Positions 14,507 to 34,929 of a DNA stretch of 44,387 bases are shown here, piece by piece. How positions within the stretch are numbered: position 1 is the stretch's first letter; the number at the start of each line of letters is the position of its first letter. The translations under genes were made by a program, and so were the position numbers. Below the pieces are notes generated by a model, which searched no databases, was not told the DNA's origin, and saw only the letters and a list, made by a program, of their open reading frames with translations. Origin of the DNA: Ascoidea asiatica JCM 7603 (taxonomy: Eukaryota; Fungi; Ascomycota); contig BCKQ01000003.1 in NCBI GenBank assembly GCA_001600695.1, positions 212,052 through 256,438 on the forward strand, read 5' to 3'.

Positions 14507-15051
14507 TCATTTTGCAATACTTTCTTTAATTGTATCTTTACCACTAAAATAATGATAATTAATGTATCTATAAGCTTGACCTAATTGAGCAGTTTCATTA
14601 ACAATATGACAACCTAAAAGAAGAGGATTCCAAGGAGTAATTGAAACAGAATATTTCATAAATACAGCAGAATAAACAACTAAAGCACCAGTCATTGGAC
14701 CAGAAATAAAATCAGGATCTTTTTTTAAATCCATTATTGCAGCTACTGGTATACCAAAATTAGAAACTGGACCCCAAAAATGTGTACTACAAACATCTTT
14801 ATATTTGAATTCAAAATTAAAAAGAAAAAAGAGAAAAAGTTAGTTATTTTGATTATATTTTTTACTTTGATTGTAATAGGTTATAAATATAAATAAAGTG
14901 CTTACATCTATAATTGAAATTGTTAGTATTTCTTTGAATAATGAATTGAATAATGAGTTAGATAATAAATTAGATAAATAACTTACCTTATTGCTTCTTT
15001 ACTGAAGACAGTTGATCTGACTTTAGCCATAATACTACCGGATTGAGACAT
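14507..15051 (-). CDS. MPC1: Mitochondrial pyruvate carrier subunit 1; exons 15051-14987, 14907-14906, 14796-14507
   Basis: STHFWGPVSNFGIPVAAIMDLKKDP..ISGPMT..L..YS.VFM is the Mpc1 signature. The spliced model is 65+2+290=357 nt (118 aa). Confidence 0.92.
14797..14905 (-). other. MPC1 intron 2 (109 nt)
   Basis: GTAAGC donor at 14905, AACTAAC branch at 14845-14839, pyrimidine tract, AAG acceptor at 14799-14797. Confidence 0.75.
14908..14986 (-). other. MPC1 intron 1 (79 nt)
   Basis: GTAAGT donor at 14986, TACTAAC branch at 14928-14922, TAG acceptor at 14910-14908. Confidence 0.85.
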
Positions 15052-15710
15052 GATTATTATATTTATTTCAATTACTAGTTAGTTCTTTGGTCTATATTAC
15101 AATTACCTATATGAATGAGATATGATTATGATATCTTGTGATGCAAATTTGTATATGTTGAATGAATATAATTTTTTGATTAAACAACTTTGACTAAATT
15201 GAATATATTTGATTATTTGATTATATTTGAGATTTCGAATTGAGTGGTGGTTTGTATGCGGCTAAGCACCAGAAAGAGGAGCACCGCAGAGAAACCCCGG
15301 AGAGGTCTGGAGTAGACCTCCTGTTGGGGGTCTGCCACTCGGGTTAAAGACAGAAAAAAAGGAGGAAATATCCGGAAACAACACGGAAAAATGCGGGTTT
15401 AAAGGATGGATGTTTCGGATATAAAACGTGACGTTGGTGAAAATATCACCCTCGTAATTGAAGTATCCAGAATGGAAGAGTACCAAATTATTGGTCTTGG
15501 AGATTCTTTCGGAAATATTAAAAAAATTATTGAAAATTACTGAAAATTATTGAAGATATTTTGAGGGAAGTAAATAAATATACAAGAACAAAGGAATACA
15601 AAGATAGAACAACAGAATAAAAGAAGAGCTAGCCACAATTACCATTATAGTTTTGAGATTGAATTGTTGCTTTACTCAAAGGACATATTATCTTATCAAA
15701 ATCATTATCA

Positions 15711-15764
15711 ATGGAATACATTTACGCTCCTCCCCCTCCACCTCCAAACAACAACAATAACAAC

Positions 15765-15847
<83 letters not shown>

Positions 15848-17210
15848 TAATAATAATGGAAATAATAATAAAAGACAGAATAATATGAATTATCGAAACA
15901 ATAATAAGAGAAAAAAGTTCAATAATTCTCTCAATAATACTCTCAATAATAACAATAACTATAATACTTTTAACACCAATCAAAACTTCAATCAAAACTC
16001 TAACCAAAATTTTAATCAGAACTTCAATCAAAATTTCAATCAGAGCTTCAATCAGAATTTTAGTCAGAACTTTAATCAGAATTACAATCAAAATCAACCT
16101 ACACAATACACCAATTTCAATGTTCAAAGAAATCATCAAGATAATAATAACAGTCAAAATAATCAGAAAAATAAACCATATAATTTCCTTCAAAGAATAC
16201 CAAACAAGTCAAAAACTAAACCTACAAAGAAAAATAATAATAAATCAAAGAATCAATCAAATAATCAATCAAAGAATCAAAATACAATAAGTTTATTGAA
16301 TAATCTACCCACTCATTTACCAAATAAACCACAGATTATTGCAAAAAGCAATAATAGTGATATTAATAACAGAGATAATAATCAAGATAATGAAATACAA
16401 AATGATAATAATAATAATAATAATAATAATGATTATGATAACGAAGTTTTAGATGAGGAAGCTTTATATCTCAATAATCAAAGCCTCAAAGAAAAACCTT
16501 CAATTCCAATTCCTGGAACTAATATTATTTTAGATTCTGAGAAAGATATTAAAGAATGGATTAATCAAAGAAAAAAAAATTGGCCAACAAATAAAAGAAT
16601 TCAGGAAAAACATGAAAAGGTTAATCAAAATGATGTTCGAAATGATAGTCAAAGTAATAGTCAAAGCCAAAACGATAATCAAAACAGTAATCAAAACAAT
16701 AATTCAAACAATCATAAAAATAATAATCAAAATAATAATAGTAAAAAGTTATGTTTAGGCTTAATCAAATATAATAATTGTAAAAAAAAAAATTGTTCAT
16801 TTGATCATAATTTGAATTCATTGAAAGAATATAAAGCTTTAGAAATTGAGAAGAAAAAAAAAAATTTAATACCAAATGATTTATTACCTTTAATTAAAAA
16901 TAAAAAATTAATCAAAAACATAAATGGTTATAGATTCTATATTCCTGATAAATTAGAACCAATAAAAAACTCTTTAAGATTTCAACAAAATTCATTATCA
17001 AATAGTAATAATAATTATAGAAATAAAAGGAATAATGATAATAGAAATAGTAATAAAAACAATTCTAATAAATTGATTAATAATAATGATTTCTATTCAA
17101 TGTTGGTTCAAAAAGATAATGAAAAGGATAATTTAAATATTCTTGAATTCATTAATGAAATAATCAAAAATGGTTTAATTCCGAATAACTTCAAAGATTT
17201 GAAATTCTAA
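15711..17210 (+). CDS. RSA1: Rsa1/NUFIP1-like box C/D snoRNP assembly factor with CCCH zinc finger
   Basis: IPGTNIILDSEKDIKEWINQRKKNWPT is the NUFIP1/Rsa1 PEP motif; C-x8-C-x4-C-x3-H at 16752-16808; C-terminal ENxxILEFI-like helix. Confidence 0.8.
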
Positions 17211-23856: not shown

Positions 23857-23927
23857 GCGTAAGTGGTTTAGTGGTAAAATTCAACGTTGCCATCGTTGGG
23901 CCCCCGGTTCAATTCCGGGCTTACGCA
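23857..23927 (+). tRNA. tRNA-Gly(GCC), copy 1
   Basis: 71 nt, GCGTAAG/CTTACGC acceptor stem, TTGCCAT anticodon loop, GGTTCAATTCC B box, followed by a poly-T terminator. Confidence 0.97.
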
Positions 23928-26645: not shown

Positions 26646-26716
26646 TGCGTAAGCCCGGAATTGAACCGGGGGCCCAACGATGGCAACGTTGAATTTTACC
26701 ACTAAACCACTTACGC
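26646..26716 (-). tRNA. tRNA-Gly(GCC), copy 2
   Basis: Exact reverse complement of copy 1. Confidence 0.97.
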
Positions 26717-34858: not shown

Positions 34859-34929
34859 TGCGTAAGCCCGGAATTGAACCGGGGGCCCAACGATGGCAAC
34901 GTTGAATTTTACCACTAAACCACTTACGC
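34859..34929 (-). tRNA. tRNA-Gly(GCC), copy 3
   Basis: Identical to copy 2. Confidence 0.97.

Follow-up and report, generated by a model that had tools for sequence, protein, structure and literature searches.

A 2-nt microexon predicted in MPC1 of Ascoidea asiatica and shared with four other budding-yeast lineages

How the coding sequence of MPC1 in Ascoidea asiatica JCM 7603 is joined across two sets of splice signals that lie only two nucleotides apart, and whether those two nucleotides form a real exon, is the question raised by this locus. Herein, we analyzed a window of 44,387 nucleotides (contig BCKQ01000003.1, forward-strand positions 212,052 to 256,438) with a GC content of 23.8%; the coordinates below are positions in this window. 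MPC1 is located on the minus strand. Exon 1 (14987–15051) starts with the ATG at 15051–15049 and contains 21 codons (MSQSGSIMAKVRSTVFSKEAI) followed by AG, in phase 2, with the AG ending at 14987. Intron 1 (14908–14986, 79 nt) carries the donor GTAAGT (14986–14981), the branch site TACTAAC (14928–14922), and the acceptor TAG (14910–14908). The next two nucleotides, AT (14906–14907), provide the third base of an Arg codon, AGA, and the first base of a Tyr codon, TAT. Intron 2 (14797–14905, 109 nt) follows with the donor GTAAGC (14905–14900), the branch site AACTAAC (14845–14839), and the acceptor AAG (14799–14797). Exon 3 (14507–14796) begins with AT GTT TGT AGT ACA CAT TTT TGG and ends with the stop codon TGA (14509–14507). 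An acceptor-like TAG (14787–14789) also occurs within the Cys-Ser codons TGT AGT of exon 3, and it is in frame only with the microexon skipped. The initial annotation had described two full signal sets around the AT, and every coordinate and motif was verified: a complete donor, branch site, and acceptor are present on either side. The script used for this re-check of all coordinates revealed that no AG intervenes between the branch site and the acceptor in either intron. The acceptor AAG of intron 2 is weak, and its donor GTAAGC departs from the GTAAGT/GTATGT consensus by a single base.

To establish the identity of the gene, homology searches were run per exon, and the joined frames were computed by local scripts from the window sequence. 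Exon 3 encodes the MPC domain, with a Pfam PF03650 match at E 1.2e-32 and a score of 112.7 bits, above the cut-off of 27. In the homologue search, exon 3 was closest to Mpc1 of Ascoidea rubescens, with 84% identity; Mpc1 proteins from many budding yeasts came next, and the best relatives were named MPC1, not Mpc2/3. For exon 1, 13 of the 21 residues matched the N-terminus of A. rubescens Mpc1 without gaps. Over the A. asiatica genome of 20.3 Mb in 71 contigs, there was one MPC1-type locus and one MPC2-type locus; the latter lies on another contig, C8, and bears the Mpc2-type signature HFWAPTLKWG. The divergent neighbour of MPC1 is a NUFIP1/Rsa1 gene (15711–17210, plus strand; Pfam NUFIP1, E 4.5e-13), which also adjoins MPC1 in A. 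rubescens (L001), Saccharomycopsis crataegensis (L006), Nadsonia fulvescens (L008), and the Logan contig L005; it was not called at the fetched MPC1 loci of Geotrichum candidum and Lipomyces starkeyi. The dN/dS ratio against A. rubescens was 0.20 for exons 1 and 3 together. Judged from its sequence, the gene is a functional, syntenic, and single MPC1 orthologue, which we take to be the counterpart of MPC1/YGL080W in Saccharomyces cerevisiae.

The MPC2-like gene (C8:356017-356450; L002/L004) was observed to contain one intron directly after ...IHFW, with the signals GTAAGT, TACTAAT, and an AAG acceptor, and the interior of this intron is an AT-rich tandem repeat. As in intron 2 of MPC1, no AG occurs between the branch site and this AAG. 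Between MPC1 and NUFIP1/Rsa1, a GC-rich island (15240–15345) stands out in this genome of 24% GC. Its minus strand folds with −46.1 kcal/mol (z −3.05), and it is single copy in the genome. The island had no Rfam match and no clear similarity to the intergenic region of A. rubescens, while TTCCGGA-like motifs were present in the intergenic regions of both species. The island may act as a shared promoter element, or it may encode an RNA that is not annotated.

Splice signals of this type can also arise by chance, and we compared the window with Markov-shuffled sequence. Full donor-branch-AG sets were found five times on the two strands of the window, versus 1.15 ± 1.1 expected. Two sets no more than 5 nt apart occurred once, at MPC1, and in none of 300 shuffles. 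Among the other three sets, at least one was a false positive over a tRNA-Gly gene; since signal sets also arise falsely in this way, one set alone is little evidence. There are three tRNA-Gly(GCC) genes in the window, at 23857–23927 (plus strand), 26646–26716 (minus strand), and 34859–34929 (minus strand), and it is the opposite strand of the last one that gives the false GTAAGC...TACTAAC...AG intron-like match.

We then listed all GT-AG paths of one or two introns in which the MPC frame was preserved. This yielded 24 in-frame paths, only two of which had consensus donor and branch signals. The first includes the 2-nt exon, with the inclusion junction exon 1-AT-ATGTTTGT, where ATGTTTGT is the start of exon 3; its product reads ...SKEAIRYVCSTHFWG, which contains the fully conserved ...AIRYVCSTHFWG. 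The second removes a single 200-nt intron from 14986 to the TAG at 14787 and gives ...SKEAISTHFWG, without RYVC, confirming that this TAG would permit an in-frame bypass lacking four residues, as had been pointed out. Other combinations broke the frame. Joining exon 1 straight to the AAG acceptor, with the microexon skipped, led to a stop after three codons, so the frameshift predicted for skipping was borne out, and such a transcript would probably be a target of nonsense-mediated decay (NMD). Inclusion of the microexon together with use of the distal TAG likewise produced a frameshift.

The conservation of the protein distinguishes the two consensus paths. The Tyr at position −4 of THFW was kept in 109 of the 114 homologues having an N-terminus; of the five exceptions, at least four were evident mis-predictions at the microexon site (P0004, P0026, P0047, and P0061). 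The path with the 2-nt exon is the only consensus path that gives the Arg-Tyr found in these 109 homologues, in agreement with the claim of the initial annotation that the conserved protein requires the microexon. Its product aligned without gaps to other yeast Mpc1 proteins, as had been expected, and also to a solved Mpc1 structure chain at this site. By contrast, a deletion of the four residues Arg-Tyr-Val-Cys was seen in 0 of the 120 homologues retrieved.

These data bear on the possibility that the single 200-nt intron (14986–14787) is what the cell removes, with the internal acceptor/donor pair as a decaying relic and a protein lacking Arg-Tyr-Val-Cys as the product. The path is in frame and has a consensus donor, the AACTAAC branch site, and a strong TAG acceptor. 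However, the splicing machinery would have to ignore a perfect TACTAAC-TAG located 58–79 nt from the donor and to skip the first AG after the second branch site, and the product would lack residues present in essentially all homologues. Moreover, the internal signals are intact in this genome of 24% GC, and A. rubescens has coding sequence matching the 10 nt that this path would remove, ATGTTTGTAG. We therefore regard removal of a single intron as improbable.

Public Mpc1 proteins were threaded on their own genomic DNA, allowing exons of 1 nt or more and GT/GC-AG introns. A 2-nt exon was recovered in N. fulvescens (L008; GTC AA/GTATGT...TAG/AT/GTATGT...TAG/AT GTC, slashes marking splice sites), L. 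starkeyi (L010; ATT CG/GTGGGT...TAG/AT/GTACGT...CAG/AT GTT), and G. candidum (L014/L015; GTC AA/GTATGT...TAG/AT/GTAAGA...TAG/AC ATT), and in these three species it was the sole GT/GC-AG solution that reproduced the annotated protein. The Logan contig L005, from a GC-rich yeast that is Dipodascales-like by similarity, showed ATC AA/GTATGT...CAG/GT/GTAAGT...CAG/AC GTG. In all five cases, A. asiatica included, the two nucleotides are the third base of a Lys/Arg codon and the first base of a Tyr codon, and intron 1 has the identical phase-2 position in the Lys/Arg codon in Lipomyces, Nadsonia, Geotrichum, and L005. The comparison of MPC1 intron positions across fungi that had been proposed thus revealed a shared 2-nt exon at the positions seen in A. 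asiatica. The microexon had been viewed as an oddity of this genome, and this view did not hold, for four other budding-yeast lineages share the orthologous exon, which is ancient.

Other species had fewer introns at the site. A. rubescens (L001) has one intron, AGA T/GTATGT...AAG/AT GTT, which corresponds to intron 2 of A. asiatica and has an AAG acceptor too. Yarrowia (L009) has one intron at the intron-2 position, and Saccharomycopsis, Candida dubliniensis, and Babjeviella are intronless at the site. For Babjeviella inositovora (L017 1129–1506), the public model takes an internal Met as its start (MCTTHFWG...); a complete N-terminus without an intron, MSQASGAASQSLASKLFSKATLKY, can be read from an in-frame ATG located 72 nt further upstream. 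In Orbilia (L012) and Fusarium (L013), no intron was found at the yeast microexon positions; their intron is elsewhere and interrupts the His codon of THFWG, which lies four codons 3′ of the microexon in yeasts. These two genera therefore do not carry the age of the microexon beyond the budding yeasts. A metagenome scan classified 80 MPC1 loci, among which no additional microexon case was found: 13 were intronless at the site, 29 were continuous or interrupted differently just upstream of the motif, and 38 (L043, L047, etc.) were without an intact STHFWG motif, which is consistent with a Pezizomycotina-type intron. A few of the 80 loci looked metazoan-like.

Transcript-level support came from G. 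candidum. An ENA assembly contig of 629 nt (L016) contained the exact G. candidum Mpc1 as an unbroken ORF with UTRs. When L016 was compared with the G. candidum genomic locus, bases 1–117 corresponded to exon 1 and bases 120–144 to exon 3, with exactly two bases, AT, between these blocks, and the later blocks corresponded to exons 4 and 5. The simplest reading is that L016 is an assembled mRNA that includes the 2-nt exon. The genome annotation of G. candidum was manual, using an RNA-seq library (PMC4479816). For Nadsonia and Lipomyces, the JGI models may have been built from homology and not from transcripts.

Taken together, these results suggest that A. asiatica MPC1 very probably has a genuine, constitutively included 2-nt exon between two canonical introns, an ancestral feature of budding yeasts that would have been retained here. 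Lipomyces belongs to the earliest-branching budding-yeast order, Nadsonia and Geotrichum are Dipodascales, and the A. asiatica locus stands for an Ascoidea-like lineage. That two introns were gained at identical positions three separate times is very unlikely, which argues for an ancestral microexon; most probably, the common ancestor of the budding yeasts already had it. The gene would then have lost its introns stepwise, with intron 1 alone gone in A. rubescens and Yarrowia and both gone in many yeasts, and in A. rubescens a precise loss of intron 1 would have fused the AT to exon 1. The comparison with A. rubescens had also raised a recent intron gain 2 nt upstream of an older intron, and this was ruled out by Lipomyces, Nadsonia, Geotrichum, and L005.

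In yeast, splicing proceeds by intron definition rather than exon definition. In A. asiatica, each intron would be recognized via its own donor and branch site, so that an exon of 2 nt would be no obstacle. The two introns would not be removed simultaneously, because U1, when paired with the intron-2 donor at positions −3 to +6, would mask the acceptor AG of intron 1, and because the intron-1 branch adenosine lies merely 18 nt upstream of the intron-2 donor; splicing is thus expected to be sequential. The order of removal should be immaterial, with the same mRNA formed both ways. When intron 1 is removed first, exon 1 plus AT would serve as the 5′ exon for GTAAGC; when intron 2 is removed first, TAG/AT-ATGTT would still be a normal acceptor.

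The initial annotation had also proposed a splicing switch on pyruvate import, in which inclusion, skipping (leading to a stop and NMD), and in-frame bypass would be balanced to tune Mpc1 output or to produce a short isoform. All three outcomes are possible by sequence, a TAG follows the weak AAG acceptor at a distance of 10 nt, and an exon of 2 nt makes skipping conceivable. Nevertheless, the AG at +10 is not conserved: it is absent in Nadsonia, Lipomyces, Geotrichum, and L005, whose Ser codon is TCx, and the equivalent CAG in A. rubescens is out of frame. The in-frame bypass also takes two disfavoured choices, the skipping of the microexon and the passing of the first AG, and none of the 120 homologues retrieved lacks the four residues. 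The TAG at 14789–14787 can be explained as a by-product of the Cys-Ser codons TGT-AGT; it is possibly a minor acceptor. Nothing supports a regulatory switch, which we consider unlikely to the same degree as removal of a single intron. That the gene is decaying, inefficiently spliced, or non-functional has next to no probability, as nothing beyond its odd architecture and the weak AAG acceptor points that way; against this stand the sole MPC1 locus with its intact frame and low dN/dS, the conserved synteny, and the presence of the MPC2-like partner gene.

The initial annotation had suspected mis-annotation at this site. The models of several related yeasts were indeed wrong here, although some public models already contain the 2-nt exon. 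Spurious insertions were found in the models of Lipomyces orientalis (P0030), L. kononenkoae (P0045 and P0061), and Kockiozyma suomiensis (P0047). The protein of L. arxii (P0009) is a 'partial' one that starts at exon 3, and the models P0003 and P0004, from two further yeasts, open with residues translated from the 3′-terminal part of intron 2. The Mpc1 model of the A. asiatica genome may be wrong at this site as well; neither the truncated ORF nor the exon-3 peptide was found by exact look-up in the protein collection searched.

The closest parallels are the MPC1 models of G. candidum CLIB 918, N. fulvescens, and L. starkeyi, which concern the same gene and codon position, with AT between YAG and GTAxGx. 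A. asiatica differs from these yeasts in belonging to a different order (Ascoideales-like), in its GC content of 23.8%, and in the AAG acceptor of intron 2. The literature searched, with subscription journals outside its scope, contained no description of an MPC1 microexon. Microexons of 1 nt have been described in plant APC11 and VPS55 (PMC4674806, PMC8831610), and a 1-nt exon in Fusarium CYP621A (PMC12940212). The MPC1 exon resembles them as an ultra-short internal exon in a conserved motif between two canonical introns, with deep conservation, lineage losses via precise intron loss, and routine omission by annotation. Unlike them, it measures 2 nt and occurs in an intron-poor budding yeast with rigid TACTAAC-type signals, and its RNA proof is from an orthologue only. 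The MPC1 2-nt exon thus adds to the known ultra-short microexons, and it is already present, unremarked, in a few public gene models.

Two other systems of stepwise splicing were compared. Spliceosomal twin introns (stwintrons) occur in fungi, including Lipomyces (PMC7138796), and also involve two obligatorily consecutive reactions on nested or abutting signals. In a stwintron, however, the internal intron interrupts a splice signal, the donor hexamer, and nothing is left in the mRNA, whereas intron 1 of MPC1 ends 2 nt before an intact GTAAGC and those 2 coding nucleotides are kept. Ratchet-point recursive splicing of the Drosophila Ubx type involves a zero-length exon in very long introns. 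It shares with MPC1 an acceptor directly followed by a donor and stepwise removal, but the introns of MPC1 are only 79 and 109 nt. Readings of the locus as a stwintron or as recursive splicing were ruled out, as the 2 coding nucleotides are retained.

A more far-reaching idea is that intron-poor yeasts have preserved the microexon over hundreds of millions of years for its role as a gate that controls pyruvate import through splicing; we give this only a slim chance. If it were true, failure of the two-step reaction would produce an early-stop transcript subject to NMD or, in A. asiatica, an in-frame protein four residues shorter, and Mpc1 output would track the state of the splicing machinery or carbon metabolism.

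The wrong Mpc1 models that this site gives in several public yeast genomes mean that annotation pipelines merit checking. A conserved 2-nt exon in yeasts with near-invariant splice signals is a simple setting in which to examine how a spliceosome deals with an acceptor and a donor 2 nt apart and in which order the two reactions proceed, and Geotrichum and Lipomyces, which are growable and engineerable, are usable systems for studying the splicing of such an exon. The species pattern itself represents a clean case of stepwise intron loss in the budding yeasts, from both introns kept, through the loss of intron 1, to the loss of both.
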